Positions 11,226-59,036 of a stretch of DNA of 64,000 nucleotides are shown piece after piece. The stretch lies in assembly GCF_028641065.1 (NCBI RefSeq), contig NC_073400.1, forward strand, positions 31,930,001-31,994,000. The letters are read 5' to 3'. The stretch's first letter is position 1, and every line of letters begins with the position of its first letter. This DNA comes from Leucoraja erinacea. Lineage: Eukaryota. Under the pieces are notes generated by a model that was not told the origin of the DNA, did no database searches, and saw nothing but the letters and a program-made list of their open reading frames with translations. The position numbers and the translations under genes were made by a program.

Positions 11226-11568
11226 TGACCAGAACGAGACGTGGTGGAGACACAAGCAGGATGTGTGGGGCGCCTGGTTGGCCGCTGGCAGCTGGGATGA
11301 CGTTGTTCTTGTTAAACGTTAACGGCTGATGCAACGACACGTTTGGCAGAGGGTGGAGAGGTCGCGGCTGACTCCGGCCAATGCTCCGTGGGAGGCAGTG
11401 ATTGGTTGAATGTACGTGAGGGCAGACAATGAGGGGCAGGAGAAGCCGGGAGTCGGTATAAAAGGAGCGAGCGATGGCAGGAGATGAGAACAAGACCGAC
11501 CCCGTCACCCTGTGTGGAGACTCCGGAGCTGGTAACCAACCCTGTGGATCCTTCAAGTGTCTGTGAGT
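11226..11568 (+). promoter_or_regulatory. V-gene promoter and non-coding exon 1 (copy A): C/EBP-ATF site, CCAAT, ERSE, TATA
   Basis: TGATGCAAC 11327-11335; CCAAT 11378-11382; CGTGG-N9-ATTGG 11387-11405; TACGTG 11413-11418; TATAAAA 11457-11463; candidate donors GTAACC 11532 and GTGAGT 11563; acceptor ends at 12108. Confidence 0.75.
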
Positions 11569-12112
11569 GATGGGGGTGGGATTGTCTCTGTTCACTGTTC
11601 CCCCAGTTCAGAAGCCTGATAGCAGAGGGGAAGAAGCTGTTCCTGAGTCTGGTGGTGCGCGCTTTCAAGCTTCTGTACCTTCTGCTAGACAGGACCAGGG
11701 AGAAGGAGGAATGACCGGGGTGGGACAAGTGATGGAGTCATAGAGTCACAGCGAGACCTTCGGCCCAACTTGCCCGCGCCCACCAACGTGTCCCCATCAA
11801 TACTAGACCCATCTGCCTGCGTTTGGCCCTTACCCCTCTAATCCTGTCCTATCAATGTACCTGTCTAACTGTTTCTTAATCATTGTGATAGTACCTGCCT
11901 CAACTACCTCTTCCGGCAGCTCGTTCCAAACACCCTCCACCCTTTGTGTAAAAAAGTCACCCCTCAGTTTTCCATGAAATCTTTCCCCCCCCCCTCGCCT
12001 TAAACCGATGTCCTCTGGTTCTCGATTCCCCAACTCTGGGCGGGTTCAGGGAATGCCATCATGAATCCTACTGAGTTGCAATAAGGTGACCCATTGTTTC
12101 ACCCACAGGAAC

Positions 12113-12687
12113 ATGGGACTGCAGAGATGGATAGGATTCATGGTCCTTGTGGAGATGGTGTGGCAAGTCTCCGCAACTGGAACAGGTCCGATCTCCAGAG
12201 AATGGGGAGAGGAAGCAAACTTGGCCGGGCGGAACGCACGGTCGTATTGGCATGTCAACAATGAACAGCTTCCAAGATGCACGGACAAGCCAGACTCTGC
12301 TGGTGATCACCCTTTAATCATTAGTCTGCAGGTTGCCGTTGTGTCTCCGAGTGGTTCTATTACGCTGCCCTGTAAACTATCCAAGAATTACAGTAAACCT
12401 ACCCTCGTCACATGGAAAAAAGACGGTGTGTTGCCATTGCAACATATCACAGTTGGTTTTCAGTGGGGTATAAGGGATCGTATCCCCGCTGGAAGTTCGT
12501 GAATAACAATATATTGAAACATCGGGACGCCTCGTTGGTCCTGTGGGGGGTACAAGAGAAAGATGCCGGGACATATACCTGCATTTGGTCCACTTCTCAT
12601 CATGGGAAATGTCATGTATTGACATGGCTGAAAATAGAGAGAAACCTCCCAATGATTCACCACGCACTCCCCCCAATCCCACACTGA
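12113..12687 (+). pseudogene. secreted single V-set Ig domain gene, copy A, frameshifted
   Basis: Matches the intact copy at 43955-44527 except for an extra TG near 12428 (gacggtgTGttgcc), giving an early stop at 12502. Confidence 0.75.
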
Positions 12688-12773
12688 CCTTTCTGTCCTG
12701 GGCCGCCTCCACTGTCAGAGTGAGGCCAAGTGCAAATTGGAGGGATAGCACTCAAATTTCACTTGGGCAGCTT

Positions 12774-15180
12774 ATTCAGATTCAGATTCAGATTCAAACA
12801 TTATTGTCATTGTGCAGTGTACAGTACAGAGACAACAAAATGCAGTTAGCATCTCCCTAGAAGAGCGACATAGAATATGAGCAATAAATAAATATACGTG
12901 CATACAGTCGTAGTAGTGCAATTTTTATCTGGTGGATGAGTGTCCGGGGGCAATCACCGAGGTACAGTGTTGAGTAATGTAACAGCCGCAGGGAAGAAGC
13001 TGATCCTGGACTGCTGGTTCAGCAATGGAGAGACCAGTAGCGCCTCCCGCACGGGAGGAGGGTAAACAGTCTATGGTTGGGATGTTAAACTGAGTTCTTC
13101 TGTCAATCTAAAGTCAACTTGACTCAAACACTTGTTGCTGTTAAAATCAATTCTTTATTCAACTGAGACTAGTCTCTTGAACCTTCCAACACAGAGCTGT
13201 TGCTCTGGGGCGGGTCCAGAGAGGAGTAACTTTGATACAAACTCATGGCATTTATATAGGTATTAGACATTTCAGATACAGAGGGTATGACAAGCTAGTA
13301 ACCAATCATCTGAGTCCTTTTTACAATCTTCGTTTGTCTATGGTATAACTTTATAACTTTGTTTCAGAATTATTTTATTTCAACACAGCAAAACCCCAGT
13401 AGGCTCTTATCAAGGACCACTCCTCAAAATATAAGATACAGACAATGATCACACAAGTCATACACACTTTCTATACCAAGAAGAAAGATATTTCTATAAA
13501 TCTAAACAATTTCTATGTCTAAAGTGTACATTTCTACTAAGGCAATACATTTCATAATTTGTTTTACTACAATTTCACAGTTTGAAATACTTTTACCTAG
13601 GTCTTTAAAACATTAATTATATAAGTTTGCTGAATTACAGTTTCTAAGTTCAAAACCTATACCCATCCCAACCAAGGATACATGGGTCGTAAATCTGTCA
13701 ACTTACTTAATTAGTGTTTGATTCCAGGATACAGCTTCATTCACTTAACTTACATACTTCATACAGCTTAACTTACAGCCTCCCCTTCTCCTGCTATCTC
13801 TGGGAGCTGGATTTCCAATCTCTCTACAAGGCCTTTTACAAATATTACAAATGATCTTCTTCTCCAAGCAACGACTCCCCTTCACATACATCCTAATTCA
13901 ACATAGCCAAAGCTAACTACAGGGCCTATTATCTCTCAGCCCTGAACTATATCTCAAACTCAGCTCAAAGCTCAGTTTGACTCACAGCTCAAGAATGTCC
14001 ACAAAGAAAAGTGAATCTGACCTAAGAAGAGGCCCTTATTCAGTTATCTATTTTCCAACACAATCATACCAAGTACAATTTCCTCCAGTGTTATAATTGC
14101 CTCAGCAATAAACCTAAGCTAAACAGGTTCAGGTTCAGGCCTCAATGTTTTGATTCATCTTTGCCTGTGTGTATCTGTCTGGACTTTATTTCGCCAGGAA
14201 AACCCTAAGCTTTTCTTTTGCAAATTACCTAGCTTATATAAAAATCACTATCCAAACGGTTCTATTTATATAATATTTCCTCAGGGGTGAGAGCAGTCCT
14301 CGACGATGCTGAGTGCCCTTTGCAGACATTGCTTGCTCTGGACAGACTCAATGGAGGGGAGGGAGGAACCGGTGATGCGTCGGGCAATTTTCAACACCCT
14401 CTGCAGTGCTTTCTGGTCGGAGACAGAGCAGTTGCCGTACCATACTGTGATAAAGTTGGTAACCATGCTCTCGATGGTGCAGCGGTAGAAGTTCACCAGA
14501 ATCTGAGGAGACAGATGGACCTTCTTCAGTCTCCTCAGGGAGAAGAGACGCTGATGAGCCTTCTTGACCAGAGTTGAGGTATTGTGGGTCCAAGAGAGGT
14601 CATCGGAGATGTTGACCCCCAGAAACCTGAAGCTGGAAACACGTTCCACCTCCGGCCCGTTAATGTGGATGGGGGTGTGCGTGCCGCCCCTAGACTTCCT
14701 GAAGTCTACAATGAGCTCCTTGGTCTTCTTGGAGTTAAGGGCCAGGTTGTTGTCAGCGCACCATGCTGCTAGGAGCTGGACCTCCTCCCTGTAGGCCGAC
14801 TCGTCGTTGTTGCTGATGAGGCCAATCACCGTTGTATCATCTGCATACTTGACGATGGTGTTAGTACCATGTACAGGTGTGCAGTCGTAGGTGAAGAGGG
14901 AGTAGAGGAGGGGGCTCAGCACACAGCCCTGTGGAACGCCGGTGTTCAGGGTGAGAGTTGAAGAGGTGTGCTTGTCTAACCTCACAGACTGGGGTCTGTT
15001 GGCTAGAAAGTCCAATATCCAGTTGCAGAGGGAGGGGTCAATGCCCAGGTTACCGAGTTTGGTGATCAGTTTAGAGGGCATAATGGTGTTGAATGCTGAG
15101 CTGTAATCGATGAACAGCATTCTTATGTAAGTGTCTCTGTTGTCGAGGTGGGAGAGGGCGGAGTGAAGTGCCGGAGTGAA
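12774..15180 (-). mobile_element. 5'-truncated Rex1/Babar LINE split by a solo LTR (copy about 44614-47010)
   Basis: RT ORF 14281-15120 ([27 protein letters not shown]); 3' part 12774-13082 with (tctgaa)n tail. Confidence 0.88.
13083..14283 (-). mobile_element. 1.2-kb solo LTR (ERV-like); copy 44921-46114
   Basis: TG...CA ends; 4-bp flanks ggga/gggg; minus-strand order CCAAT box 13302, TATATAAA 13258-13251, AATAAA 13159-13154, terminal AACA. Confidence 0.8.
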
Positions 15181-16363: not shown

Positions 16364-17545
16364 GATTCAGATTCAGATTCAGATTCAATTTTCATTGTCA
16401 TTGTCAGTGTACAGTACAGAGACAACGAAATGCATTTAGCATCTCCCTTGAAGAGCGACATAGCAAACGATTTGAATTAAAAAAAAAAAAATAATAAGTG
16501 GGGGGTGATTGGCAGTCACCGAGGTACGTTGTTGAGTAGAGTGACAGCCGCCGGAAAGAAGCTGTTCCTCGACCTGCTGGTTCGGCAACGGAGAGACCTG
16601 TAGCGCCTCCCGGATGGTAGGAGGGTAAACAGTCCATGGTTGGGGTGAGAGCAGTCCTTGGCGATGCTGAGCGCCCTCCGCAGACAGCGCTTGCTTTGAA
16701 CAGACTCAATGGAGGGGAGCGTGGAACCGGTGATGCGTTGGGCAATTTTCACCACCCTCTGCAATGCCTTCCGGTCGGAGACAGAGCAGTTGCCATACCA
16801 TACTGTGATGCAGTTGGTAAGGATGCTCTCGATGGTGCAGCGGTAGAAGTTCACCAGGATCTGAGGAGACAGATGGACCTTCTTCAGTCTCCTCAGGAAG
16901 AAGAGACGCTGATGAGCCTTCTTGATCAGAATAGAGGTATTGTGGGTCCAAGAGAGGTCATCGGAGATGTTGACTCCCAGGAACCTGAAGCTAGAAACAC
17001 GTTCCACCTCCGTCCCGTTAATGTGGATGGGGGTGTGCGTGCCACCTCTGGACTTCCTGAAGTCTACAATGAGCTCCTTGGTCTTCTTGGAGTTAAGGGC
17101 CAGGTTGTTGTCAGCGCACCATGCTGCTAAGTGCTGGACCTCCTCCCTGTAGGCCAGCTCATCGTTGTTGCTGATGAGGCCAATCACCGTTGTATCATCT
17201 GCATACTTGATGATGGTGTTAGTACCATGTACAGGTGTGCAGTCATAGGTGAAGAGGGAGTAGAGGAGGGGGCTCAGCACACAGCCCTGAGGAACGCCGG
17301 TGTTCAGGGTGAGGGTTGAAGAGGTGTGCTTGTCTAACCTCACAGACTGGGGTCTGTTGGTTAGAAAGTCCAGTATCCAGTTGCAGAGGGAGGGGTCGAT
17401 GCCCAGGTTACCGAGTTTGGTGATCAGTTTTGATGGAATAATGGTGTTGAATGCTGAGCTGTAATCGATGAACAGCATTCTTACATAAGTGTCTCTGTTG
17501 TCAAGGTGGGAGAGGGCGGAGTGAAGTGCCGTTGAGATGGCATCT
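16364..17545 (-). mobile_element. 5'-truncated young Rex1/Babar LINE (copy 48113-49280 has a premature stop)
   Basis: Open 320-aa RT C-terminal ORF 16516-17478; (tctgaa)n tail; empty site visible near 24310. Confidence 0.92.
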
Positions 17546-17746
17546 CAACCCTGATGGATACTGCACCACTGGTGATGCCCCACGTACGTTGTCTTGTACT
17601 ATCATGGTCTGGTTTACTTGGAATAACTGAGACCTTATTGTGTACTTATGGTGTAAGTATATAATCATGATAGGCCAGGGTAGACAGTGGAGGGCTGCCA
17701 CTACAGAGCCACCCATAGACCTGATAGAATTATATAAAGTTACTGT

Positions 17747-20027: not shown

Positions 20028-20070
<43 letters not shown>

Positions 20071-21174: not shown

Positions 21175-21517
21175 TGACCAGAACGAGACGTGGTGGAGAC
21201 ACAAGCAGGATGTGTGGGGCGCCTGGTTGGCCGCTGGCAGCTGGGATGACGTTGTTCTTGTTAAACGTTAACGGCTGATGCAACGACACGTTTGGCAGAG
21301 GGTGGAGAGGTCGCGGCTGACTCCGGCCAATGCTCCGTGAGAGGCAGTGATTGGTTGAATGTACGTGAGGGCAGACAATGAGGGGCAGGAGAAGCCGGGA
21401 GTCGGTATAAAAGGAGCGAGCGATGGCAGGAGATGAGAACAAGACCGACCCCGTCACCCTGTGTGGAGACTCCGGAGCTGGTAACCAACCCTGTGGATCC
21501 TTCAAGTGTCTGTGAGT
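21175..21517 (+). promoter_or_regulatory. V-gene promoter/exon 1, copy B (ERSE variant)
   Basis: Same block as 11226-11568; ERSE reads CGTGA-N9-ATTGG at 21336-21354. Confidence 0.7.
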
Positions 21518-22060
21518 GATGGGGGTGGGATTGTCTCTGTTCACTGTTCCCCCAGTTCAGAAGCCTGATAGCAGAGGGGAAGAAGCTGTTCCTGAGTCTG
21601 GTGGTGCGCGCTTTCAAGCTTCTGTACCTTCTGCTAGACAGGACCAGGGAGAAGGAGGAATGACCGGGGTGGGACAAGTGATGGAGCCATAGAGTCACAG
21701 CGAGACCTTCGGCCCAACTTGCCTGCGCCCACCAACTTGTCCCCATCAATACTAGACCCACCTGCCTGCGTTTGGCCCTTACCCCTCTAATCCTGTCCTA
21801 TCAATGTACCTGTCTAACTGTTTCTTAATCATTGTGATAGTACCTGCCTCAACTACCTCTTCCGGCAGCTCGTTCCAAACACCCTCCACCCTTTGTGTAA
21901 AAAAGTCACCCCTCAGTTTCCCATGAAATCTTTCCCCCCCCCTCGCCTTAAACCGATGTCCTCTGGTTCTCGATTCCCCAACTCTGGGCGGGTTCAGGGA
22001 ATGTCATCATGAATCCTACTGAGTTGCAATAAGGTGACCCATTGTTTCACCCACAGGAAC

Positions 22061-22600
22061 ATGGGACTGCAGAGATGGATAGGATTCATGGTCCTTGTGG
22101 AGATGGTGTGGCAAGTCTCCGCAACTGGAACAGGTCCGATCTCCAGAGAATGGGGAGAGGAAGCAAACTTGGCCGGGCGGAACGCACGGGCCCCTCGACA
22201 AGTCACCAATGAACAGCTTCCAAGATGCACGAACGAGTCAGATTCTGATGCCATCAGTCATCACCCATCACCGATTAACAAGAAGGTGCTCGTTGCATCT
22301 CTGGGTGGTTCTGTTACGTTGCCATGTAATTTATCCAACGTTTACAATTATCTCAGGTTTGTTGAATGGAAAAAAGATGGTGTTCAAATTGCCAGTTTCC
22401 AAGAGAGAACGTATGCGCATTATATGGGGTCTGATGTTCACTGGAAGTTCGTGCATCACGACGTCTATACGACTAGGGACGCCACGTTGCTCCTGACAGG
22501 TGTAAAAGAGGAAGATACAGGGACGTATTCCTGTGTTTGGCTCAAGTATCGTCAGAAACCGGTTTGTGAATTATTGATGCAGCTGATGATCTCTCACTGA
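22061..22600 (+). CDS. secreted single V-set Ig domain protein, copy B (179 aa)
   Basis: Acceptor cccacag|GAAC ATG; signal peptide MGLQRWIGFMVLVEMVWQVSA; GGSVTLPC...W...DATLLLTGVKEEDTGTYSC; 68 aa between canonical Cys; stop right after G strand; no TM. Confidence 0.85.
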   Translation: MGLQRWIGFMVLVEMVWQVSATGTGPISREWGEEANLAGRNARAPRQVTNEQLPRCTNESDSDAISHHPSPINKKVLVASLGGSVTLPCNLSNVYNYLRFVEWKKDGVQIASFQERTYAHYMGSDVHWKFVHHDVYTTRDATLLLTGVKEEDTGTYSCVWLKYRQKPVCELLMQLMISH

Positions 22601-23565: not shown

Positions 23566-24972
23566 AGGGCCTGTCCCACGAGCATGCGACTCCATGCGGC
23601 AAGCGCGACCTAACGTGGTCACTTGAGCCGTACGGCCTCGCGGGGCCGGTCCCACTTTGATCGCCGGAGCCGTATGGAGTTGTGTGGAGCTGGTCCCGAC
23701 ATCGCACGGAGCTCTGAAAAACTGAATATGTTAGGATATGGAAACAGGCTCTTCGGCCCACCGAGTCCAACCCAACCAGTGATCACCCCTACACTAGTTC
23801 TAACCTACACACTAGGGACAATTTACTGAAGCCAATTAACCATCAAATCTACACGTCTTTGCAATCTGAAAGGAAACCAGAGCACCCGGAGGAAACCCAC
23901 ATGGTCACAGGGACAATGTACATACACTGTACAGACAGTGCCCGTAGTCACCATCGAAGGCGGGTCTCTAGCGCTGTAAGGCAGCAACTCTACCGCTGCG
24001 CCACTGTACCGCCCCTGCATTGCCCTCGTGCATTGTTAGGGCTGCTGATTAGAGTCCAGTTTTGACCCTCGTTGGGTGTCAATTGTGGTTGTCAAGGAGC
24101 TTTCTTACCTCCGTATGGAGCCTGGTCTTCCAGTTATAGACCCACACCACCCTGGCCACACTCTCTTATCACCACTACTGAGGGGAAGATACAGGAGCCT
24201 GAGAACCGTGAGCTCCAGGTTCAAGAGCAGCTTCTTCCCAGCAAGCACAAGGTTGTTGAACCAGCCTGCACAACCCCAATCACAACCCTACGCCACTCAC
24301 CACAACCCTACACAACCCTGATGGACACTGCACCACTGGTGATGCCCCACGTACGTTGTCTTGTACTATCATGGTCTGGTTTACTTGGAATAACTGAGAC
24401 CTTATTGTGTACTTATGGTGTAAGTATATAATCATGATAGGCCAGGGTAGACAGTGGAGGGCTGCCACTACAGAGCCACCCATAGACCTGATAGAATTAT
24501 ATAAAGTTACTGTGCAGACCAAGTACAAACCCAACACAATATTCCACCACTCACCCATTCCCCAACGCTATATTCCACCACTCACCCGCTCCTCAACATT
24601 ATATTCCACCACTCACTCATAGCCCCCAACTATGCAGGCGCGGCTCATTTCTCTGCATCCCCTCTTCCTCCTCTTCACCCTCCCTCTTCAATACCTAGAG
24701 AGAGAGAGAGGAGGGGGAGAGAAGGAGAGAGGCAGAGAGAAAGGGGGTAGAGAGAGAGTGGGAAGGGGTAGAGGGAGAAGGAGGGTGGTAGTGGTGGGGA
24801 GGGATTAAATACATTCTTCTCAAGCTTACCCCCAGTCTAGTTCAGTCAAAAACCACTGAGTCAAGCACTGGAACAACTAAACTTTATTTTTGGATTGTAC
24901 ATCAAATTCCCCCTCACGATACCTAAACCACTGCGGGTTCAATCCTTGTATCTGCTTGGCCAAACCCTTCAG

Positions 24973-28973: not shown

Positions 28974-29316
28974 TGACCAGAACGAGACGTGGTGGAGACA
29001 CAAGCAGGATGTGTGGGGCGCCTGGTTGGCCGCTGGCAGCTGGGATGACGTTGTTCTTGTTAAACGTTAACGGCTGATGCAACGACACGTTTGGCAGAGG
29101 GTGGAGAGGTCGCGGCTGACTCCGGCCAATGCTCCGTGGGAGGCAGTGATTGGTTGAATGTACGTGAGGGCAGACAATGAGGGGCAGGAGAAGCCGGGAG
29201 TCGGTATAAAAGGAGCGAGCGATGGCAGGAGATGAGAACAAGACCGACCCCGTCACCCTGTGTGGAGACTCCGGAGCTGGTAACCAACCCTGTGGATCCT
29301 TCAAGTGTCTGTGAGT
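28974..29316 (+). promoter_or_regulatory. V-gene promoter/exon 1, copy C
   Basis: Intact ERSE 29135-29153, TATA about 29205. Confidence 0.72.
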
Positions 29317-29857
29317 GATGGGGGTGGGATTGTCTCTGTTCACTGTTCCCCCAGTTCAGAAGCCTGATAGCAGAGGGGAAGAAGCTGTTCCTGAGTCTGG
29401 TGGTGCGCGCTTTCAAGCTTCTGTACCTTCTGCTAGACAGGACCAGGGAGAAGGAGGAATGACCGGGGTGGGACAAGTGATGGAGTCATAGAGTCACAGC
29501 GAGACCTTCGGCCCAACTTGCCCGCGCCCACCAACGTGTCCCCATCAATACTAGACCCACCTGCCTGCGTTTGGCCCTTACCCCTCTAATCCTGTCCTAT
29601 CAATGTACCTGTCTAACTGTTTCTTAATCATTGTGATAGTACCTGCCCCAACTACCTCTTCCGGCAGCTCGTTCCAAACACCCTCCACCCTTTGTGTAAA
29701 AAAGTCACCCCTCAGTTTCCCATGAAATCTTTCCCCCCCTCGACTTAAACCGATGTCCTCTGGTCCTCGATTCCCCAACTCTGGGCGGGTTCAGGGAATG
29801 TCATCATGAATCCTACTGAGTTGCAATAAGGTGACCCATTGTTTCACCCACAGGAAC

Positions 29858-30397
29858 ATGGGGCTGCAGAGCTGGATAGGATTCATGGTCCTTGTGGAGA
29901 TGGTGTGGCAAGTCTCCGCAACTGGAACAGGTCCGATCTCCAGAGAATGGGGAGAGGAAGCAAACTTGGCCGGGCGGAACGCACGGGCCCCTCGACAAGT
30001 CACCAATGAACAGCTTCCAAGATGCACGGACAAGTCAGATTCTGATGCCATCAGTCATCACCCATCACCGATTAACAAGAAGGTGCTCGTTGCATCTCTG
30101 GGCGGTTCTGTTACGTTGCCATGTAATATATCCAACCTTAAAAATCATCACAGGTTTGTTGAATGGATAAAAGATGGTGTTGAAATTGCCCATTTCCATG
30201 AGAGAGCGTATGCACATTATACGGGATCTGATGTTCACTGGAAGTTCGTGCATCACGACGTCTATATGACTCAGGACGCCACGTTGCTCCTGACAGGTGT
30301 AAAAGAGGAAGATAAAGGGTCGTATTCCTGTGTTTGGTCCGTGTATAGAGATAGACCGTTTTGTGAATTATTGATGCAGCTGGTGATCTCTCACTGA
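29858..30397 (+). CDS. secreted single V-set Ig domain protein, copy C (179 aa)
   Basis: Same architecture as copy B; intact ORF; DKGSYSC motif. Confidence 0.85.
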   Translation: MGLQSWIGFMVLVEMVWQVSATGTGPISREWGEEANLAGRNARAPRQVTNEQLPRCTDKSDSDAISHHPSPINKKVLVASLGGSVTLPCNISNLKNHHRFVEWIKDGVEIAHFHERAYAHYTGSDVHWKFVHHDVYMTQDATLLLTGVKEEDKGSYSCVWSVYRDRPFCELLMQLVISH

Positions 30398-32687: not shown

Positions 32688-33655
32688 TAACCTATAAATC
32701 TACACATCTTTGCAATCTGAAAGGAAACCAGAGCACCCGGAGGAAACCCACATGGTCACAGGGACAATGTACATACACTGTACAGACAGTGCCCGTAGTT
32801 ACCATCGAAGGCGGGTCTCTAGCGCTGTAAGGCAGCAACTCTACCGCTGCGCCACTGTACCGCCCCTGCATTGCCCTCGTGCATTGTTAGGGCTGCTGAT
32901 TAGAGTCCAGTTTTGACCCTCGTTGGGTGTCAATTGTGGTTGTCAAGGAGCTTTCTTACCTCCGTGTGGAGCCTGGTCTTCCAGTTATAGAACCACACAC
33001 ACCCTGGCCACACTCTCTTATCACCACTACTGAGGGGAAGGTACAGGAGCCTGAGAACCGTGAGCTCCAGGTTCAAGAGCAGCTTCTTCCCAGCAAGCAC
33101 AAGGTTGTTGAACCAGCCTGCACAACCCCAACCACAACCCTACGCCACTCACCATAACCCTACACAACCCTGATGGACACTGCACCCACTGGTGATGCCC
33201 CACGTACGTTGTCTTGTACTATCATGGTCTGGTTTACTTGGAATAACTGAGACCTTATTGTGTACTTATGGTGTAAGTATATAATCATGATAGGCCAGGG
33301 TAGACAGTGGAGGGCTGGCACTACAGAGCCACCCATAGACCTGATAGAATTATATAAAGTTACTGTGCAGACCAAGTACAAACCCAACGCAATATTCCAC
33401 CACTCACCCGCTCCCCAACGCAATATTCCACCACTCACCCGATCCCCCAACGGAACCCGTTCCCCAACGCAATATTCCACCACTCTGGGAAACAGGTCCT
33501 TCGGCCCAACTTGCCCACATTGGACAACATGTCCCAGCTACACTAGTCCCACCTGTCCAAGTTTGGTCCATATCCCTCCAAATCTGGCCTATCCATGTAC
33601 CTGTCTAGCTGTTTCTTAAATGTCGGGATAGTTTCTGCCTCAACCTGCGATGGGT

Positions 33656-33939
33656 TGACCAGAACGAGACGTGGTGGAGAGGACACAAGCAGGATGTGTG
33701 GGGCGGCCTGGTTGGCCGCTGGCAGCTGGGATGACGTTGTTCTTGTTAAACGTTAACGGCTGATGCAACGACACGTTTTGGCAGAGGGTGGAGAGGTCGC
33801 GGCTGACTCCGGCAATGCTCCCGTGGGAGGCAGTGATTGGTTGAATGTACGTGAGGGCAGACAATGAGGGGCAGGAGAAGCGGGGAGTCGGTATAAAAGG
33901 ATGCGAGCGATGGCAGGAGATGAGAACAAGACCCGACCC
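33656..33939 (+). promoter_or_regulatory. V-gene promoter cut by the assembly gap
   Basis: ERSE 33822-33840 and TATA about 33892; many 1-nt indels consistent with a low-quality contig end. Confidence 0.6.
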
Positions 33940-34039
33940 NNNNNNNNNNNNNNNNNNNNNNNNNNNNNNNNNNNNNNNNNNNNNNNNNNNNNNNNNNNNN
34001 NNNNNNNNNNNNNNNNNNNNNNNNNNNNNNNNNNNNNNN
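33940..34039. other. assembly gap (100 N)
   Basis: Run of N. Confidence 1.
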
Positions 34040-34099
34040 CAAACTCGCTAAACGCCCACAGGAAAAGTTGGGTTTCTTTGCATGTGGAAGGACACTCAC

Positions 34100-43069: not shown

Positions 43070-43410
43070 GCCAGAACGAGACGTGGTGGAGACACAAGCA
43101 GGATGTGTGGGGCGCCTGGTTGGCCGCTGGCAGCTGGGATGATGTTGTTCTTGTTAAACGTTAACGGCTGATGCAACGACACGTTTGGCAGAGGGTGGAG
43201 AGGTCGCGGCTGACTCCGGCCAATGCTCCGTGGGAGGCAGTGATTGGTTGAATGTACGTGAGGGCAGACAATGAGGGGCAGGAGAAGCCGGGAGTCGGTA
43301 TAAAAGGAGCGAGCGATGGCAGGAGATGAGAACAAGACCGACCCCGTCACCCTGTGTGGAGACTCCGGAGCTGGTAACCAACCCTGTGGATCCTTCAAGT
43401 GTCTGTGAGT
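43070..43410 (+). promoter_or_regulatory. V-gene promoter/exon 1, copy A'
   Basis: Intact ERSE 43229-43247, TATA about 43299. Confidence 0.72.
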
Positions 43411-43954
43411 GATGGGGGTGGGATTGTCTCTGTTCACTGTTCCCCCAGTTCAGAAGCCTGATAGCAGAGGGGAAGAAGCTGTTCCTGAGTCTGGTGGTGC
43501 GCGCTTTCAAGCTTCTGTACCATCTGCTAGACAGGACCAGGGAGAAGGAGGAATGACCGGGGTGGGACAAGTGATGGAGTCATAGAGTCACAGCGAGACC
43601 TTCGGCCCAACTTGCCCGCGCCCACCAACTTGTCCCCATCAATACTAGACCCATCTGCCTGCGTTTGGCCCTTACCCCTCTAATCCTGTCCTATCAATGT
43701 ACCTGTCTAACTGTTTCTTAATCATTGTGATAGTACCTGCCTCAACTACCTCTTCCGGCAGCTCGTTCCAAACACCCTCTACCCTTTGTGTAAAAAAGTC
43801 ACCCCTCAGTTTTCCATGAAATCTTTCCCCCCCCCCTCGCCTTAAACCGATGTCCTCTGGTTCTCGATTCCCCAACTCTGGGCGGGTTCAGGGAATGCCA
43901 TCATGAATCCTACTGAGTTGCAATAAGGTGACCCATTGTTTCACCCACAGGAAC

Positions 43955-44527
43955 ATGGGACTGCAGAGATGGATAGGATTCATGGTCCTTGTGGAGATGG
44001 TGTGGCAAGTCTCCGCAACTGGAACAGGTCCGATCTCCAGAGAATGGGGAGAGGAAGCAAACTTGGCCGGGCGGAACGCACGGTCGTATTGGCATGTCAA
44101 CAATGAACAGCTTCCAAGATGCACGGACAAGCCAGACTCTGCTGGTGATCACCCTTTAATCATTAGTCTGCAGGTTGCCGTTGTGTCTCCGAGTGGTTCT
44201 ATTACGCTGCCCTGTAAACTATCCAAGAATTACAGTAAACCTACCCTCGTCACATGGAAAAAAGACGGTGTTGCCATTGCAACATATCACAGTTGGTTTT
44301 CAGTGGGGTATAAGGGATCGTATCCCCGCTGGAAGTTCGTGAATAACAATATATTGAAACATCGGGACGCCTCGTTGGTCCTGTGGGGGGTACAAGAGAA
44401 AGATGCCGGGACATATACCTGCATTTGGTCCACTTCTCATCATGGGAAATGTCATGTATTGACATGGCTGAAAATAGAGAGAAACCTCCCAATGATTCAC
44501 CACGCACTCCCCCCAATCCCACACTGA
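43955..44527 (+). CDS. secreted single V-set Ig domain protein, copy A' (190 aa, divergent subtype)
   Basis: Same leader; SGSITLPC...VTW...DASLVLWGVQEKDAGTYTC; intact ORF; no TM. Confidence 0.85.
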   Translation: MGLQRWIGFMVLVEMVWQVSATGTGPISREWGEEANLAGRNARSYWHVNNEQLPRCTDKPDSAGDHPLIISLQVAVVSPSGSITLPCKLSKNYSKPTLVTWKKDGVAIATYHSWFSVGYKGSYPRWKFVNNNILKHRDASLVLWGVQEKDAGTYTCIWSTSHHGKCHVLTWLKIERNLPMIHHALPPIPH

Positions 44528-47500
44528 CCTTTCTGTCCTGGGCCGCCTCCACTGTCAGAGTGAGGCCAAGTGCAAATTGGAGGGATAGCACTCAAATTTC
44601 ACTTGGGCAGCTTATTCAGATTCAGATTCAGATTCAAACATTATTGTCATTGTGCAGTGTACAGTACAGAGACAACAAAATGCAGTTAGCATCTCCCTAG
44701 AAGAGCGACATAGAATATGAGCAATAAATAAATATACGTGCATACAGTCGTAGTAGTGCAATTTTTATCTGGTGGATGAGTGTCCGGGGGCAATCACCGA
44801 GGTACAGTGTTGAGTAATGTAACAGCCGCAGGGAAGAAGCTGTTCCTGGACTGCTGGTTCAGCAACGGAGAGACCTGTAGCGCCTCCCGCACGGGAGGAG
44901 GGTAAACAGTCTTGTTGGGATGTTAAACTGAGTTCTTCTGTCAATCTAAAGTCAACTTGACTCAAACACTTGTTGCTGTTAAAATCAATTCTTTATTCAA
45001 CTGAGACTAGTCTCTTGAACCTTCCAACACAGAGCTGATGCTCTGGGGCGGGTCCAGAGAGGAGTAACTTTGATACAAACTCATGGCATTTATATAGGTA
45101 TTAGATATTTCAGATACAGAGGGTATGACAAGCTAGTAACCAATCATCTGAGTCCTTCTTTTTACAATCTTCGTTTGTCTATGGTATAACTTTATAACTT
45201 TGTTTCAGAATTATTTTATTTCAACACAGCAAAACCCCAGTAGGCTCTTATCAAGGACCACTCCTCAAAATATAAGATACAGACAATGATCACACAAGTC
45301 ATACACACTTTCTATACCAAGAAGAAAGATATTTCTATAAATCTAAACAATTTCTATGTCTAAAGTGTACATTTCTACTAAGGCAATACATTTCATAATT
45401 TGTTTTACTACAATTTCACAGTTTGAAATACTTTTACCTAGGTCTTTAAAACATTAATTATATAAGTTTGCTGAATAACAGGTTCTAAGTTCAAAACCTA
45501 TACCCATCCCAACCAAGGATACATGGGTCGTAAATCTGTCAACTTACTTGATTAGTGTTTGGTTCCAGGATACAGCTTCATTCACTTAACTTACATACTT
45601 CATACAGCTTAACTTACAGCCTCCCCTTCTCCTGCTATCTCTGGGAGCTGGATTTCCAATCTCTCTACAAGGCCTTTTACAAATATTACAAATGATCTTC
45701 TTCTCCAAGCAACGACTCCCCTTCACATACATCCTAATTCAACATAGCCAAAGCTAACTACAGGGCCTATTATCTCTCAGCCCTGAACTATATCTCAAAC
45801 TCAGCACAAACCCCACAGCTCAAGAATGTCCACAAAGAAAAGTGAATCTGACCTAAGAAGAGGCCCTTATGCAGTTATCTATTTTCCAACACAATCATAC
45901 CAAGTACAATTTCCTCCAGTGTTATAATTGCCTCAGCAATAAACCTAAGCTAAACAGGTTCAGGTTCAGGCCTCAATGTTTTGATTCATCTTTGCCTGTG
46001 TGTATCTGTCTGCACTTTATTTCGCCAGGAAAACCCTAAGCTTTTCTTTTGCAAATTACCTAGCTTATATAAAAATCACTATCCAAACGGTTCTATTTAT
46101 ATAATATTTCCTCAGGGGTGAGAGCAGTCCTCGACGATGCTGAGTGCCCTTTGCAGACATTGCTTGCTCTGGACAGACTCAATGGAGGGGAGTGAGGAAC
46201 CGGTGATGCGTCGGGCAATTTTTAACACCCTCTGCAGTGCTTTCTGGTCGGAGACAGAGCAGTTGCCATACCATACTGTGATACAGTTGGTAAGGATGCT
46301 CTCGATGGTGCAGCGGTAGAAGTTCACCAGAATCTGAGGAGACAGATGGACCCTCTTTAGTCTCCTCAGGGAGAAGAGACGCTGACGAGCCTTCTTGACC
46401 AGAGTTGAGGTATTGTGGGTCCAAGAGAGGTCATCGGAGATGTTGACCCCCAGAAACCTGAAGCTGGAAACACGTTCCACCTCCGGCCCGTTAATGTGGA
46501 TGGGGGTGTGCGTGCCGCCCCTAGACTTCCTGAAGTCTACAATGAGCTCCTTGGTCTTCTTGGAGTTAAGGGCCAGGTTGTTGTCAGCGCACCATGCTGC
46601 TAGGAGCTGGACCTCCTCCCTGTAGGCCGACTCGTCGTTGTTGCTGATGAGGCCAATCACCGTTGTATCATCTGCATACTTGACGATGGTGTTAGTACCA
46701 TGTACAGGTGTGCAGTCGTAGGTGAAGAGGGAGTAGAGGAGGGGGCTCAGCACACAGCCCTGTGGAACGCCGGTGTTCAGGGTGAGAGTTGAAGAGGTGT
46801 GCTTGTCTAACCTCACAGACTGGGGTCTGTTGGCTAGAAAGTCCAATATCCAGTTGCAGAGGGAGGGGTCAATGCCCAGGTTACCGAGTTTGGTGATCAG
46901 TTTAGAGGGCATAATGGTGTTGAATGCTGAGCTGTAATCGGTGAACAGCATTCTTATGTAAGTGTCTCTGTTGTCGAGGTGGGAGAGGGCGGAGTGAAGT
47001 GCCGGAGTGAAATGCCAGTAGCAAAGCCTAGTTCAGTCCAGAGGTACAACAAGGAAACAGGCCCTTCAGCCCACCGGGTCAGTGGAGACCAATGATCACC
47101 CAATGCAATAGTTCTATCCCACATGGTTTTATGGGGACATGGGCCAAATGAAGTGAAATGGGATGAGCTTAGATGGGGTATATGGGTCTGCATGGCCAAG
47201 TTGGGCTGAAGGGCCTGTTTCCGTGCTGTAAGACTCTATGACACCAAGTAGGGAATAGTAAAGGTATAAAGATGAGCAGCGTGGAAGGTGTGAGCGTGGA
47301 TCGCATGCAGTGCGGAGAACTGACCTTGCTTGCACCAGTAAATGTACGTTTAATGTAAATAAACTCTCTTCTGCCAGCCCTGAAGACAGCCGGTGTGAGT
47401 GATTCTTTGTACGCCAGCATTGAGCTGGGTGTGAACTTTGTGCAACTCTTGCTCACTACGGGCGACATCGCCAGATTAAGTGTCATGGAGTTGCCTTCAA

Positions 47501-50113
47501 ATTAGTTTAGTTCGGTTTTGCTTATAGATACAGCGTGGAAACAGGCTCTTCGGCTCACCGAGTCCAACCCAACCAGTGATCACCCCTACACTAGTTCTAA
47601 CCTACACACTAGGGACAATTTACTGAAGCCAATTAACCATCAAATCTGCACGTCTTTGCAATCTGAAAGGAAACCAGAGCACCCGGAGGAAACCCACATG
47701 GTCACAGGGACAATGTACATACACTGTACAGATAGTGCCCGTAGTCACCATCGAAGGCGGGTCTCTAGCGCTGTAAGGCAGCAACTCTACCGCTGCGCCA
47801 CTGTACCGCCCCTGCATTGCCCTCGTGCATTGTTAGGGCTGCTGATTAGAGTCCAGTTTTGACCCTCGTTGGGTGTCAATTGTGGTTGTCAAGGAGCTTT
47901 CTTACCTCCATATGGAGCCCGGTCTTCCAGTTATAGACCCACACCACCCTGGCCACACTCTCTTATCACCACTACTGAGGGGAAGGTACAGGAGCCTGAG
48001 AACCGTGAGCTCCAGGTTCAAGAGCAGCTTCTTCCCAGCATGCACAAGGTTGTTGAACCAGCCTGCACAACCCCAACCACAACCCTACGCCACTCACCAC
48101 AACCCTACACAAGATTCAGATTCAGATTCAGATTCAATTTTAATTGTCATTGTCAGTGTACAGTACAGAGACAACGAAATGCATTTAGCATCTCCCTTGA
48201 AGAGCGACATAGCAAACGATTTGAATTAAAAAAAATAAATAAGTGGGGGGTGATTGGCAGTTGTTGTTTAGTAGAGTGACAGCCGCCGGAAAGAAGCTGT
48301 TCCTCGACCTGCTGGTTCGGCAACGGAGAGACCTGTAGCGCCTCCCGGATGGTAGGAGGGTAAACAGTCCATGGTTGGGGTGAGAGCAGTCCTTGGCGAT
48401 GCTGAGCGCCCTCCGCAGACAGCGCTTGCTTTGAACAGACTCAATGGAGGGGAGCGTGGAACCGGTGATGCGTTGGGCAATTTTCACCACCCTCTGCAAT
48501 GCCTTCCGGTCGGAGACAGAGCAGTTGCCATACCATACTGTGATGCAGTTGGTAAGGATGCTCTCGATGGTGCAGCGGTAGAAGTTCACCAGGATCTGAG
48601 GAGACAGATGGACCTTCTTCAGTCTCCTCAGGAAGAAGAGACGCTGATGAGCCTTCTTGATCAGAATAGAGGTATTGTGGGTCCAAGAGAGGTCATCGGA
48701 GATGTTGACTCCCAGGAACCTGAAGCTAGAAACACGTTCCACCTCCGTCCCGTTAATGTGGATGGGGGTGTGCGTGCCACCTCTGGACTTCCTGAAGTCT
48801 ACAATGAGCTCCTTGGTCTTCTTGGAGTTAAGGGCCAGGTTGTTGTCAGCGCACCATGCTGCTAAGTGCTGGACCTCCTCCCTGTAGGCCAGCTCATCGT
48901 TGTTGCTGATGAGACCAATCACCGTTGTATCATCTGCATACTTGATGATGGTGTTAGTACCATGTACAGGTGTGCAGTCATAGGTGAAGAGGGAGTAGAG
49001 GAGGGGGCTCAGCACACAGCCCTGAGGAACGCCGGTGTTCAGGGTGAGGGTTGAAGAGGTGTGCTAGTCTAACCTCACAGACTGGGGTCTGTTGGTTAGA
49101 AAGTCCAGTATCCAGTTGCAGAGGGAGGGGTCGATGCCCAGGTTACCGAGTTTGGTGATCAGTTTTGATGGAATAATGGTGTTGAATGCTGAGCTGTAAT
49201 CGATGAACAGCATTCTTACATAAGTGTCTCTGTTGTCAAGGTGCGAGAGGGCGGAGTGAAGTGCCGTTGAGATGGCATCTCAACCCTGATGGACACTGCA
49301 CCACTGGTGATGCCCCACGTACGTTGTCTTGTACTATCATGGTCTGGTTTACTTGGAATAACTGAGACCTTATTGTGTACTTATGGTGTAAGTATATAAT
49401 CATGATAGGCCAGGGTAGACAGTGGAGGGCTGCCACTACAGAGCCACCCATAGACCTGATAGAATTATATAAAGTTACTGTGCAGACCAAGTACAAACCC
49501 AACACAATATTCCACCACTCACCCATTCCCCAACGCTATATTCCACCACTCACTCATAGCCATCAACTATGCAGGCACGGCTCATTTCTCCGCATTACCT
49601 CTTCCTACTCTTCACCCTCCCACTTTAATACCTAGAGGGAGAGAGGAGGGGGAGAGAAGGAGAGAGGCAGAGAGAAAGGAGGTAGAGAGAGAGAGTGGGA
49701 AGGGGTAGAGGGAGACGGGGAGGGTGGTAGTGGGGGGGAGGGATTAAATACATTCTTCTCAAGCTTACCCCCAGTCTAGTTCAGTCAAAAACCACTGAGT
49801 CAAGCACTGGAACAACTAAACTTTATTTTTGGACTGTACATCAAATTCCCCTACACGATACCTAAACCACTGCGGGTTCGATCCTTGTATCTGCTTGGCC
49901 AAACCCTTCAGCCTTGTGCAAGCAGAAACACTCCAAAAGGTCACACAGTCCCAAGGGCTCTTCCAGAAGGTCGACAAAGGACCTGCTTTTTATAGGTCCC
50001 TGAGCCTTGAGGGGCCGAACTACATAGGGGTGGTCTCTTTACAATCCAATCAAACATATTAATTACATCAGTACATTATAGACAGTTCCCCAGACCAATA
50101 ACAGTCTCCCATA

Positions 50114-54475: not shown

Positions 54476-55015
54476 ATGGGACTGCAGAGATGGATAGGAT
54501 TCATGGTCCTTGTGGAGATGGTGTGGCAAGTCTCCGCAACTGGAACAGGTCCGATCTCCAGAGAATGGGGAGAGGAAGCAAACTTGGCCGAGCGGAACGC
54601 ACGGGCGTATTTCAAAGTCACCAATGAACAGCTTCCAAGATGCACGGACGAGTCAGATTCTGATGCCATCAGTCATCACCTATCAACGATTAACAAGAAG
54701 GTGCTCGTTGCATCTCTGGGCGGTTCTGTTACGTTGCCATGTAATATATCCAACCTTAAAAATCATCACAGGTTTGTTGAATGGATAAAAGATGGTGTTG
54801 AAATTGCCCATTTCCATGAGAGAGCGTATGCACATTATACGGGATCTGATGTTCACTGGAAGTTCGTGCATCACGACGTCTATATGACTCAGGACGCCAC
54901 GTTGCTCCTGACAGGTGTAAAAGAGGAAGATACAGGGACGTATTCCTGTGTTTGGTCCGCGTATAGAGATAGACCGGTTTGTGAATTATTGATGCAGCTG
55001 ATGATCTCTCACTGA
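54476..55015 (+). CDS. secreted single V-set Ig domain protein, copy D (179 aa)
   Basis: Intact ORF; loops like copy C, DTGTYSC and C-terminus like copy B. Confidence 0.85.
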   Translation: MGLQRWIGFMVLVEMVWQVSATGTGPISREWGEEANLAERNARAYFKVTNEQLPRCTDESDSDAISHHLSTINKKVLVASLGGSVTLPCNISNLKNHHRFVEWIKDGVEIAHFHERAYAHYTGSDVHWKFVHHDVYMTQDATLLLTGVKEEDTGTYSCVWSAYRDRPVCELLMQLMISH

Positions 55016-58000
55016 TTCAGCAGGGCCAGTCCCAGGGTCAGTAGCAAAGTCTAGTTTAGTTTAGTTTAGTTTCGTTCAGAGGTACAACAGGGAAACAAGC
55101 CCTTCGGCCCACAGAGTCAATGGGGACCAGTGATCACCCCATATACTAGTTCTATCCCACACATTAGATACAATTTACACTGACCAATTAACCTACAAAC
55201 CTGCACGTCTCTGGGGTGTGGGACGAAACCGGAGCACCCGGATTCCAAAGAGGAAGGAAGATTCCAAGGGGAGTTAGGGGCGACCGTGGCAGACAAGGGA
55301 AGTCAGGGACACTATCAAAATAAAAGAGACCAGGTATAACGTTGCAAAGATGAGCGGAAAGCCAGGGGATTGGGTAACTCTTTTAAAGAGCAACAGAAGA
55401 TAACTAAAAAAGCAATACGGGGAGAAAAGATGAGGTATGAAGGTAAGATAGCCAAGAATAGAAAGGAGGATCATAAAAGCTTCTTTAGATATGTGAAAAA
55501 AATTAGTTCAGACTAAAATTGGACTTTTATAGACTAAAAACTTTGGATCCGTCTTCACTAAGGAGAACACAAACAATCTCCCTGATGAACTAGTGGCCAG
55601 AGGATCTGGGGACAATGGAGAGCCAGTGGATGTAGTGTACCTGGACTTGCAGGAAGTATTTGATAAGGTCCCACATAGGAGATTAGTGGGCAAATTTAGA
55701 GCACATGGTATTGGGGGAAGGGCCTGTTTCCATATTGTTTGACTCTGACACTAAGTAGGGAATAGTAAAGGTATAAAGATGAGCAGCATGGAAGGTGTGA
55801 GCGTGGATCGCATGCAGTGAGGAGAACTGACCTTGCTTGCACCGGTAAATGTACGTTTAATTTAAATAAACTTTCTTCTGCCTGCCCTGAAAACAGCCGG
55901 TGTGAGTGATTCTTTGTACGCCAGCATTGAGTTGGGTGTGAACTTTGTGCAACTTTTGCTCACTACGGGCAACATCGCCGGATTAAAGGGCCTGTCCCAC
56001 GAGCATGCGACTCCATGCGGCAAGCGCGACCTAACGTGGTCACTTGAGCCGTACGGCCTCGCGGGGCCGGTCCCACTTTGATCGCCGGAGCCGTATGGAG
56101 TTGTGTGGAGCTGGTCCCGACATCGCGCGGGGCTCTGAAAAACTGAATATGTTAGGATATGGAAACAGGTTCTTCGGCCCACCGAGTCTAACCCAACCAG
56201 TGATCACCCCTACACTAGTTCTAACCTACACACTAGGGACAATTTACTGAAGCCAATTAACCTACAAATCTACACGTCTTTGCAATCTGAAAGGAAACCA
56301 GAGCACCCGGAGGAAACCCACATGGTCACAGGGACAATGTACATACACTGTACAGACAGTGCCCGTAGTCACCATCGAACGGCCGAATGGCCTACTCCTG
56401 CACCTATTAGCTATGTTTCTATGTTTCTATGTTCAGCCTCGTGCAAGCAGAAACACTCCAAAAGGTCACGCTGTCCCAAGGACTCTTCCAGAAGATCGAT
56501 AAAGGACCTCGTGGGGGCTGCCTTTTATAAGTCCCCGAACCTTGAGGGGCCGAACTACATAGGGGTGGTCTCTTTACAATCCAATCAAACATATTAATTA
56601 CATCAGTATATTATAGACAGTTTCCCAGACCACTAACAGATCCCATACATTGTTTCAGGAGAAGCTTCTGGAAGATACTAACTTAACTTGAATAATGCAA
56701 CATTTACCCTGGAATTCAAACAAACCTGCCAGGGCTCAACACTTTAGCCAATCAACAAGCAGTAGGATAACTGCCTGGCACATTATATACAATATTTACA
56801 ATGATGTTACAGTAATCCAATCAACCATGCATTTACACTTCATTGGAGGTCATCTCCTTGCACGGAAATCGGCATCAAAACATGGGGGGGCACAATTCCA
56901 TGGCGGCACACATGCACACGCGTGCATGCGGCATACACGCGAGGATTCGGCCGTGGGCCCTGTGGACGGTAACATCGGGAACTGACTTGGTTGGTGACCG
57001 ACTCCGAACTCCAGCAACAGCAGCTTCGTCCGCCCCGAATCGTGGGGCTTGAATCGGCCCGTTCGCGGGGCCTTTCATCGCCCGGCGGTGGTTTCAACAT
57101 TGGTATTGATGTGGATAGAGAACTGGCTGGCCTCTTAATCTGAGGAAAGACATTCTTGCCATAGAGGGAGTACAGAGAAGGTTCACCAGACTGATTCCTG
57201 GGATGTCAGGACTTTATGGCATACTGAGTTGGATGATCAGTATAATCATATTAAATGGCAGTGCAGGCACGAAGGGCCGAATGGCCTACTCCTGCACCTA
57301 TTTTCTATGTTTCTATGGGAGCCTCGATCGCCTCGATGCTGCAGTTTGATTTTAAGCCGCTTGGGCGCTGAAAGGCCCCGCGAACGGGACGATTCTGCCC
57401 ATAGAAAGCGTCTGATAAAGTCCGGAACACAAAACATGGGCGGGGGGGGAATCGTCCCCCAGCTCCCAAAGCATAGGGGACATGCCCCCTGTCCCCCCCA
57501 GGATTTCCGCCCATGGCGGTCACGATATCTCCTTCACCGCCGCAGTCTCGACGCCTCTTTGATGGCCGCGAAAAACTCCATGTGGGGCGTAGAAGGCCGG
57601 GTCGGATAAAGCGGAAAGTTAATTTCAATGAGGTCCTCCCCCTGACATCACTGGAAGCTGGTGGTCGACCACTCCCCCTTTGTGACATCACTCAAAGCGT
57701 GTTGAAGGTTTGCCATTTAATAAGTTGGTTTTCACTATTTTTAAAACGCTATAACTTGTGAACTACAGCATGTAATGTGAAGTGGAGCAGTTTATTTTGT
57801 CAAAGCCGTTAATACGATTACTAATGTGCGGAGGAGGGGAGGAGGAGGGTGTAGACGAGGGGGAGGGAGTGTAAGAGACTCGCGTGCGCAGTTGTGGGGT
57901 ATGGGTGAGTGGTGGAATATTGCGTTGGGGGGACGGGTACATCGCAAAGGAATCTCATTTAGATTTCTTGGGAGGAGGTTTTTCATTGTGGGGGGTGGAA

Positions 58001-58601
58001 TTGCTGAGAGGTTTCATTTACTCCTTATTTACAAAATAATTCCGATTGTGGGGAGGGGTGGGTTGGGGGCGGGGGCTCCCCGTTTCATTGTGGGGGGGTG
58101 GAGTAAGAGAGAGGTTTCATTTCCAGAATTTTCCTTGTGGGAGGGTGGGGTGAGTATTGTGGGGTATGGGTGAGTGGTGGAATATTACGTTGGGGGAACG
58201 GGGCCCAACGGGTCCCACTTGGTCTAGTTATCATTATTTATTTAATGTTTCACGTTTACACCAATCTCTCCACCACCACGAACAAGCAGCACAAGACGCA
58301 ACAAGACAGACACCATTGTATGCAGATGCCGAGAAGTGTGATCAGCTCTGGCTGAACAACTAATCTTGTGTGTGGATTCGATAAGCAGAAGATTTAATGT
58401 CATAGTGTTATACAGTCATAGAGTGATACAGCATGGAAACAGGCCCTTCGGCCCAACTTGCCCACATTGGACAACATGTCCCAGCTACAATAGTCCCACC
58501 TGTCCGTGTTTGGTCCATATCCCTCCAAATCTGACCTATACCTGTTCCTGTCTAGCTGTTTCTTAAACGTCGGGATAGTTTCTGCCTCAACTGCGATGGG
58601 T

Positions 58602-59036
58602 TGACCAGAACGAGACGTGGTGGAGACACAAGCAGGATGTGTGGGGCGCCTGGTTGGCCGCTGGCAGCTGGGATGACGTTGTTCTTGTTAAACGTTAACG
58701 GCTGATGCAACGACACGTTTGGCAGAGGGTGGAGAGGTCGCGGCTGACTCCGGCCAATGCTCCGTGGGAGGCAGTGATTGGTTGAATGTACGTGAGGGCA
58801 GACAATGAGGGGCAGGAGAAGCCGGGAGTCGGTATAAAAGGAGCGAGCGATGGCAGGAGATGAGAACAAGACCGACCCCGTCACCCTGTGTGGAGACTCC
58901 GGAGCTGGTAACCAACCCTGTGGATCCTTCAAGTGTCTGTGAGTGATGGGGGTGGGATTGTCTCTGTTCACTGTTCCCCCAGTTCAGAAGCCTGATAGCA
59001 GAGGGGAAGAAGCTGTTCCTGAGTCTGGTGGTGCGC
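58602..59036 (+). promoter_or_regulatory. orphan V-gene promoter/exon 1 with truncated intron
   Basis: Intact ERSE 58763-58781 and TATA; intron is fused to Gypsy internal sequence at 59036/59037; no V exon follows in the window. Confidence 0.68.

Follow-up and report, generated by a model that had tools for sequence, protein, structure and literature searches.

The window analysed here, 64,000 nucleotides (nt) of the genome of the little skate, Leucoraja erinacea (contig NC_073400.1, forward-strand positions 31,930,001 to 31,994,000), carries five tandem copies of one exon, recovered by open reading frame (ORF) listing and by tblastn. The exon specifies a hydrophobic leader, a spacer and one immunoglobulin (Ig) V-set domain, and then stops. 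We read these genes as a tandem, two-exon family of batoids, whose product would be a secreted single V domain derived from the membrane-distal domain (D1) of the nectin/PVR/TIGIT group and would act as a soluble binding module; we put the probability of this reading at roughly 60%. An exon of this layout in five copies had been proposed in an initial annotation of the same DNA, and all five are found, four with open frames and one frameshifted.

The start codons of the copies lie at 12113, 22061, 29858, 43955 and 54476. Two types can be distinguished, A (A1 at 12113 and A2 at 43955) and B (B1 at 22061, B2 at 29858 and B3 at 54476), and the four intact frames comprise three of B type, each 179 amino acids (aa) long, and one of A type, of 190 aa. 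The frame of A1 is broken by a 2-nt GT insertion near 12428; the insertion aside, its mature region is identical to that of A2 (399/399). Three copies equal NCBI models stripped of the models' N-terminal extension, namely the B2 ORF at 29858-30397 (LOC129708939, with an extension of 31 aa), the A2 ORF at 43955-44527 (LOC129708937) and the B3 ORF at 54476-55015 (LOC129708938), and all three are labelled "uncharacterized LOC" proteins. A protein search found no counterpart of B1 or A1 among database proteins. Every coding region stands behind a 5' cassette that runs from the promoter through a first exon and an intron into the start of the second exon. The features are as follows.

11229..12241, plus strand: 5' cassette of gene A1, with promoter, TATA at 11457, exon 1 end at 11563, intron, exon 2 start at 12109 and 43 leader and pro-like codons
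12113..12687, plus strand: coding region of gene A1, an A-type V protein, frameshifted near 12428
21178..22189, plus strand: 5' cassette of gene B1, with TATA at 21406, exon 1 end at 21512 and exon 2 start at 22057
22061..22600, plus strand: coding region of gene B1, 179 aa comprising leader, N-terminal tail, one V-set domain and stop
28977..29986, plus strand: 5' cassette of gene B2, with CCAAT boxes near 29125 and 29150, TATA at 29205, an upstream ATG at 29222 and exon 2 start at 29854
29858..30397, plus strand: coding region of gene B2, 179 aa, with a candidate AATAAA at 30695
33659..33939, plus strand: a further 5' cassette cut by the assembly gap, with TATA at 33892, stopping 30 nt after the exon-1 ATG
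33940..34039, no strand: assembly gap (N) at the junction of two 32-kb units, with sides that are not collinear
43071..44083, plus strand: 5' cassette of gene A2, with TATA at 43299, exon 1 end at 43405 and exon 2 start at 43951
43955..44527, plus strand: coding region of gene A2, 190 aa
53592..54604, plus strand: 5' cassette of gene B3, with TATA at 53820, exon 1 end at 53926 and exon 2 start at 54472
54476..55015, plus strand: coding region of gene B3, 179 aa
58605..59036, plus strand: sixth 5' cassette, with TATA at 58833 and exon 1 end at 58939; similarity ends at 59036, inside the intron

The second exon of the sixth cassette probably lies beyond the end of the window.

Leader and complete V domain are encoded by a single exon. 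All copies carry the hydrophobic leader MGLQRWIGFMVLVEMVWQVSA; the sole strongly hydrophobic window of the protein is this leader (IGFMVLVEMVWQVSA, ending V-S-A), and in the window copies no second hydrophobic stretch that might serve as a transmembrane segment follows it. About 52 aa separate the leader from strand A. Within the V domain 68 residues lie between Cys89 and Cys158, and both cysteines are invariant, as are Trp103 and Tyr156 of the YxC motif. A second pair, Cys56 and Cys169, is likewise invariant, and the disulfide that it probably forms would pin the N-terminal tail to the G strand. The domain is recognised by the Pfam models ig (PF00047, 31-41 bits against a cut-off of 21.8) and V-set (PF07686, 29-39 bits against a cut-off of 26), with a match that covers residues 74-160. 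The AlphaFold model is confident over residues 70-179 (pLDDT 76-92, with a dip to about 68 at 91-100), and the part ahead of residue 70 is disordered. The G strand is germline-encoded within the exon and has no FGxG motif, and there is no CACAGTG heptamer. The proposals that the copies lack a transmembrane segment, a joining (J) FGxG motif and a recombination signal sequence (RSS) heptamer, and that they are germline-encoded and non-rearranging, are thus borne out: none of the three elements is found in the window copies, each of which has its own G strand and stop without RSS or J. The A type differs at its end, where at 44474-44527 a 14-residue extension rich in proline and histidine, NLPMIHHALPPIPH, runs past the G strand; B types and the sequences of other species are without it. 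A furin-type propeptide was considered as a general feature and rejected, the tetrapeptide RNAR being WNAR in four of the nine aligned skate sequences (those of Leucoraja and Rhinoraja) and absent in Narcine.

Relatives were sought by a word-indexed search and by an exhaustive profile search of 1.8 billion representatives. They comprise four further full-length L. erinacea proteins (LOC129708941, LOC129708942, LOC129708945 and LOC129708946), one full-length homologue in Rhinoraja longicauda and one in Narcine bancroftii (P0064), listed at NCBI as "nectin-1-like". With an identity of 30%, the Narcine protein has in common with the skate family the leader M-x-L-x-R-W-x-G-x-x-V-L...V-W, the spacer and the four cysteines; its stop lies just past the G strand. 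Given that leader, spacer, cysteines and stop are shared, the family is older than the divergence of skates from electric rays. Word-indexed searches that started from the family alignment and from Narcine P0064 added no member outside the three batoid species, although weaker single-domain relatives may hide below 88 bits among multi-Ig proteins, and so far the family appears restricted to skates and rays. Searches of the literature on the LOC numbers, on secreted Ig proteins of skates and on nectin evolution in cartilaginous fish returned no description of it. The family is therefore annotated by NCBI yet uncharacterised, without a description in the literature searched.

Profile hidden Markov models, Foldseek, VIA-align and ESM features all place the V domain nearest to those of the nectin/PVR/TIGIT type. 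Among the 29 PDB matches of the Narcine protein, 26 are PVR, nectin-1, -2, -3 or CD96 (best E 3e-9), and the family profile ranks JAML, PVR, CD226 and nectin-2 first, with antibody V domains close behind. The check suggested in the initial annotation, a predicted structure submitted to Foldseek, gave a confident Ig fold with nectin-1 D1 as the top match (E 2e-8). VIA-align likewise puts nectin-1 D1 first (Z 15.3, rmsd 2.0 over 107 residues), about 1 Z above CAR D1. In the ESM-feature search the skate domain goes to TIGIT (0.95) and the Narcine domain to nectin-2 (0.96; structure TM-score 0.84). The view that the proteins fit no nameable family accordingly holds only in part: there are NCBI models, a named Narcine homologue and an affinity with nectin, PVR and TIGIT.

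How close is this affinity? Binding within the PVR family uses an AX6G lock in the C'-C'' region and an aromatic key, T(Y/F)P, in the FG loop (PMC10486284). Both motifs have been lost in the window: the lock site carries AHFHERAY in B-type and ATYHSWFS in A-type copies, and the key site AYR in the B type and TSH in the A type. The Narcine protein has both, an ATSAPHRG lock and a TYP key aligned to the TFP of PVR, and AX6G is kept in the L. erinacea paralogues LOC129708945 and LOC129708941 (P0005 and P0007). In nectins and nectin-like adhesion molecules a V-C-C ectodomain and a transmembrane segment are combined with a cytoplasmic tail that bears a PDZ-binding motif (PMC7286890). The proteins described here have one Ig domain and then a stop. 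Because the V domain shows the affinity but the V-C-C, transmembrane and PDZ-binding architecture is missing, we read the family as an offshoot of a nectin/PVR-type V domain and not as a nectin.

The copies evolve in two very different ways within one exon. Whichever two copies are compared, whether of one type or A with B, a 5' block of 1,010 nt is 98.8-99.6% identical. This block begins 225 nt before the TATA box, takes in exon 1 and the intron, and ends with the last RNAR codon; the cassette of A1 is 99.2-99.6% identical to those of the four other copies. Over the next 410 nt identity is 65-67% between A and B and 90-96% among the B copies. Synonymous divergence (dS) between A and B rises from about 0 in the leader and pro-like segment to 0.65-0.69 in the mature part. 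Over 3 kb of flanking sequence the B copies diverge for the most part by 0-3% (mean about 2%), with blockwise, mosaic peaks of 8-12% in the V region, where B1 diverges by 8-12% within 30078-30377 and B3 by 10% within 29978-30077. B1 is the positional homologue of B3, yet the V region of B3 is closer to that of B2. Since the neutral intron, with its long interspersed nuclear element (LINE) repeats, is also near-identical, purifying selection fails to account for the pattern, and the 5' cassette must have been homogenised by gene conversion or unequal exchange. Hypervariability driven purely by selection was rejected, as the conserved block includes the promoter and the 540-nt intron and dS jumps from 0 to 0.7.

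The ratio of nonsynonymous to synonymous divergence (dN/dS) among B copies is 1.4-1.9, a figure that rests on only 2-6 synonymous changes. The 30 variable residues take up 5 of 10 positions in the BC loop, 3 of 7 in C' and 3 of 5 in FG, along with the first residues after RNAR; strands A, B, D and E have none. The variable BC/C'/FG face is the one with which nectin-type V domains bind their partners. Open frames and retained cysteines, tryptophan and YxC at a dS of 0.7 speak for selection on a folded product.

Are the five copies five genes? By self-comparison the window consists of a unit of about 32 kb present twice, 2550-29408 matching 34040-59036 at 97-99%, and each unit holds one minus-strand GH18 chitinase gene, one A gene and two B genes. 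A run of N at 33940-34039 falls exactly at the junction. To its left a 5' cassette is cut 30 nt into exon 1; to its right the sequence resumes at the homologue of 2550, in the chitinase region. The flanks are thus discontinuous, one ending in exon 1 and the other resuming among chitinase sequence, and the gap must either be larger than its nominal 100 bases or mark a misjoin. At least one further gene copy is unassembled there. No family ORF crosses the gap, and an ORF listed across the N run is an artefact. The contig end at 33420-33939 shows hardly any differences from its paralogues other than inserted or deleted single bases, a damaged CCAAT box included; it looks like low-quality, unpolished sequence rather than real divergence.

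Part of the copy number might hence be an artefact of assembly, the units being haplotypes or a collapsed or misjoined array, with three loci in place of five. The second unit begins at the gap edge (34040 corresponding to 2550) and is collinear at 97-99%, the contig end before the gap is error-like, and the mature regions of A1 and A2 are distinguished by 2 nt only. Against this, the units are 1.2-2.9% divergent and show kilobase-scale insertions and deletions relative to each other, and B1 differs from its positional counterpart B3 by 9.5% in the V region. We consider a count of three possible, though doubtful, and it bears on the number of the genes and not on their nature.

The chitinase exons (PF00704) lie at 653-7594, on the minus strand, and at 34040-41026, with the catalytic motif in 3562-3819, and the chitinase gene stands head-to-head with the A-type V gene. 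Being together inside the duplicated 32-kb unit, chitinase and V genes were amplified together. LINE fragments with RVT_1 matches lie between the V genes (14281-15120, 16516-17478, 24978-26515, 46112-46951 and 48185-49015), a 2.8-kb stretch at 23961-26719 in the first unit is missing from the second, and at 9360-9725, between the chitinase gene and the A1 promoter, there is a tandem repeat with reiterated peptide units in one frame.

A further question is whether the genes are expressed. Three RNA runs carrying the species label, of unknown tissues and sampled at 5-25%, were aligned together with one DNA-like run to the B2 locus (28900-31400) and gave a depth of about zero on exons 1 and 2. 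Reads at this locus fall on repeats in the intron and in the 3' flank, and a single read that starts at the exon-2 acceptor is a hint and not evidence. The conserved intron of B2 contains three segments that are high-copy repeats (29320-29487, 29572-29655 and 29740-29823), one of them an antisense LINE tail, and these repeats collect large numbers of reads from all the RNA and DNA runs.

The near-zero exon depth would fit silent or decaying duplicates, with frames open only through youth and no protein made, as would the frameshift in A1, the abundance of LINE fragments in the region and the failure of B1 and A1 to appear among database proteins. Yet A and B, at a dS of about 0.69, both keep open frames, four cysteines, the tryptophan and YxC; the same architecture persists in Rhinoraja and in Narcine, which belongs to a different batoid order; and substitutions avoid the core strands. 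The partial sampling of three runs of unknown tissue also tells against drawing silence from them, and we regard decay as improbable.

The start of translation bears on whether the product is secreted or displayed. Every copy has a TATA box, two CCAAT boxes and a short first exon upstream, in agreement with the proposal that each has its own promoter. The donor of exon 1 is CT/GTGAGT (in B2 at 29311/29312), the B2 intron occupies 29312-29853 (542 nt) and contains antisense LINE-tail repeats, and in each copy the ATG of the MGLQ frame comes 4 nt after the acceptor (12109, 22057, 29854, 43951 and 54472). In B2 the acceptor is cacag/G at 29854 and the MGLQ start has A at -3 and G at +4. The NCBI models have the identical junction between exons 1 and 2 and identical stops, and they start not at MGLQ but at an in-frame ATG in exon 1 (29222 in B2).

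Translation from that ATG (MAGDENK...) would turn the leader into an internal signal anchor and the product into a type II membrane protein. The ATG is in frame in all copies, with G at -3 and G at +4, and both the L. erinacea and the Narcine NCBI models begin in exon 1. It lies, however, 17 nt past the first T of the TATA box, upstream of the expected transcription start, which in B2 would fall near 29235; on account of this short spacing the exon-1 ATG is probably not transcribed. No other ATG occurs in exon 1, the Rhinoraja model begins at MGLQ, and the Narcine extension has no real similarity to that of the skate, yet the leader behind it is conserved. We infer from these four observations that MGLQ is the true start and exon 1 non-coding. 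The hydrophobic stretch moreover ends in V-S-A, a typical signal-peptidase motif, and membrane display seems to us quite improbable. Of the proposed non-coding first exon, the exon and its junction are supported by the sequence and by the NCBI models; its non-coding status is our prediction, which departs from the NCBI models.

At the other end of the gene no donor before the stop is common to A and B types. A possible one, CTG/GTGATC, lies 12 nt ahead of the stop in B2 and is absent from B1, B3 and A2, so that the proposed lack of a donor after the G strand holds for a shared site. That the V exon is a piece of a larger membrane receptor, spliced to downstream Ig or transmembrane exons as in most vertebrate V-domain receptors, is highly improbable, for beyond this candidate donor of a single copy we find a stop after the G strand at differing places in each paralogue and in the other species, NCBI models that end at the same stops, and, by tblastn across the window, no other Ig-like segment between the genes.

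Taken together, a secreted, nectin-derived V domain is the reading that we favour. Exon 1 would most likely be a short 5' untranslated region behind a TATA/CCAAT promoter and exon 2 would encode the whole protein, which is predicted to have a cleavable signal peptide, a disordered tail of about 50 aa, an extra disulfide and one V-set domain before the stop. The V domain would come from the membrane-distal D1 of the nectin/PVR/TIGIT group with loss of D2, D3, the transmembrane segment and the tail, and with these lost the product should be a small soluble protein. Gene conversion would keep the 1-kb 5' cassette 99% identical, while the mature V part would be old, divergent and mosaic. The protein may then serve as a soluble binding module, be it decoy, ligand or opsonin, with a binding specificity that differs between copies. 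Such a role is the most likely mechanism, held at low certainty and read from the anatomy of the genes.

Several points weigh against this reading. Signal peptide, cleavage, secretion and the extra disulfide are all predicted from sequence, and a start in exon 1 would put the hydrophobic segment 36 residues into the protein, as a possible signal anchor. A profile dominated by skate sequences scores antibody V domains almost level with PVR, and the window copies have neither the AX6G lock nor the T(F/Y)P key. The copy number is uncertain in a 32-kb repeat flanked by a gap, where five may be an over- or an undercount; the synonymous changes behind the dN/dS of the B copies are few; and the three partially sampled RNA runs provide no evidence of expression.

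The tip domain of nectins and PVR is bound by many viruses and immune receptors. A wider and rather unlikely extension of the favoured reading is that batoids possess a germline-diversified humoral system, in which soluble nectin/PVR tip domains act as secreted decoys or recognition modules. The binding face would be renewed by gene conversion of V cassettes, and the homogenised promoter and leader would keep expression and export uniform. If true, RAG rearrangement and membrane-bound multigene receptors would be joined by a third way of generating V-domain diversity in jawed vertebrates. If the genes are expressed, cartilaginous fish have a hitherto undescribed class of small, soluble V-domain proteins, which would derive from the nectin/PVR/TIGIT recognition module; if they are not, the array is merely a young duplicated cluster in a repeat-rich, poorly assembled region. 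The genes are unusual in design, for a 5' cassette subject to conversion meets a divergent, mosaic binding domain in the middle of an exon, and this arrangement offers a tractable case of concerted and diversifying evolution within one exon. The family also offers a natural set of autonomous single V domains, predicted to be disulfide-braced, and a test case for receptor ectodomains becoming secreted decoys.

Compared with known systems, the family is nearest to D1 of nectins, nectin-like proteins and PVR (CD155), and to TIGIT, CD96 and CD226. The V-set fold is common to all, with high ranks for PVR, nectin-2 and TIGIT as well; the RDASL E-strand and DxGxYxC motifs occur on both sides, and variation in the skate copies falls on the same binding face. 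Unlike these proteins the skate family has no D2, D3, transmembrane segment, or tail with a PDZ-binding motif or an immunoreceptor tyrosine-based inhibitory motif (ITIM); leader and V domain share one exon; there is an N-terminal tail of about 50 aa and a predicted second disulfide; and the genes stand in tandem as a hypervariable array whose 5' cassette is homogenised.

The variable region-containing chitin-binding proteins (VCBPs) of amphioxus and Ciona are secreted, germline-encoded and diversified, with two V domains and a chitin-binding domain per chain. The skate family is likewise germline-encoded, non-rearranging, diversified and predicted to be secreted, but it has a single V domain followed by a stop and no chitin-binding domain. 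A chitin parallel extends as far as adjacency only, the skate V genes being interleaved with GH18 chitinase genes.

Rearranging V genes of Ig, TCR and IgNAR have an RSS heptamer and nonamer, an FGxG supplied by J and a leader split by an intron; the skate exon has no CACAGTG, a germline G strand without FGxG and an unsplit leader. In size, in being an autonomous single V domain and in its predicted extra bracing disulfide the skate protein resembles the IgNAR V domain and the camelid VHH, whereas it differs from them in having no RSS, J, C domains or somatic assembly, its diversity coming through duplication and conversion. With skate MDIR, teleost NITR and CD300/TREM it shares the character of a multigene, germline-diversified V-set family in fishes; unlike them it has no transmembrane segment, signalling tail or split leader. 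Finally, in evolutionary mode only, the family resembles conotoxins and defensins, which combine a frozen signal and pro region with a hypervariable mature region in tandem genes. The fold is unrelated, the switch from frozen to variable falls mid-exon, and the frozen block takes in the promoter and a 540-nt intron, which points to gene conversion rather than to selection alone.

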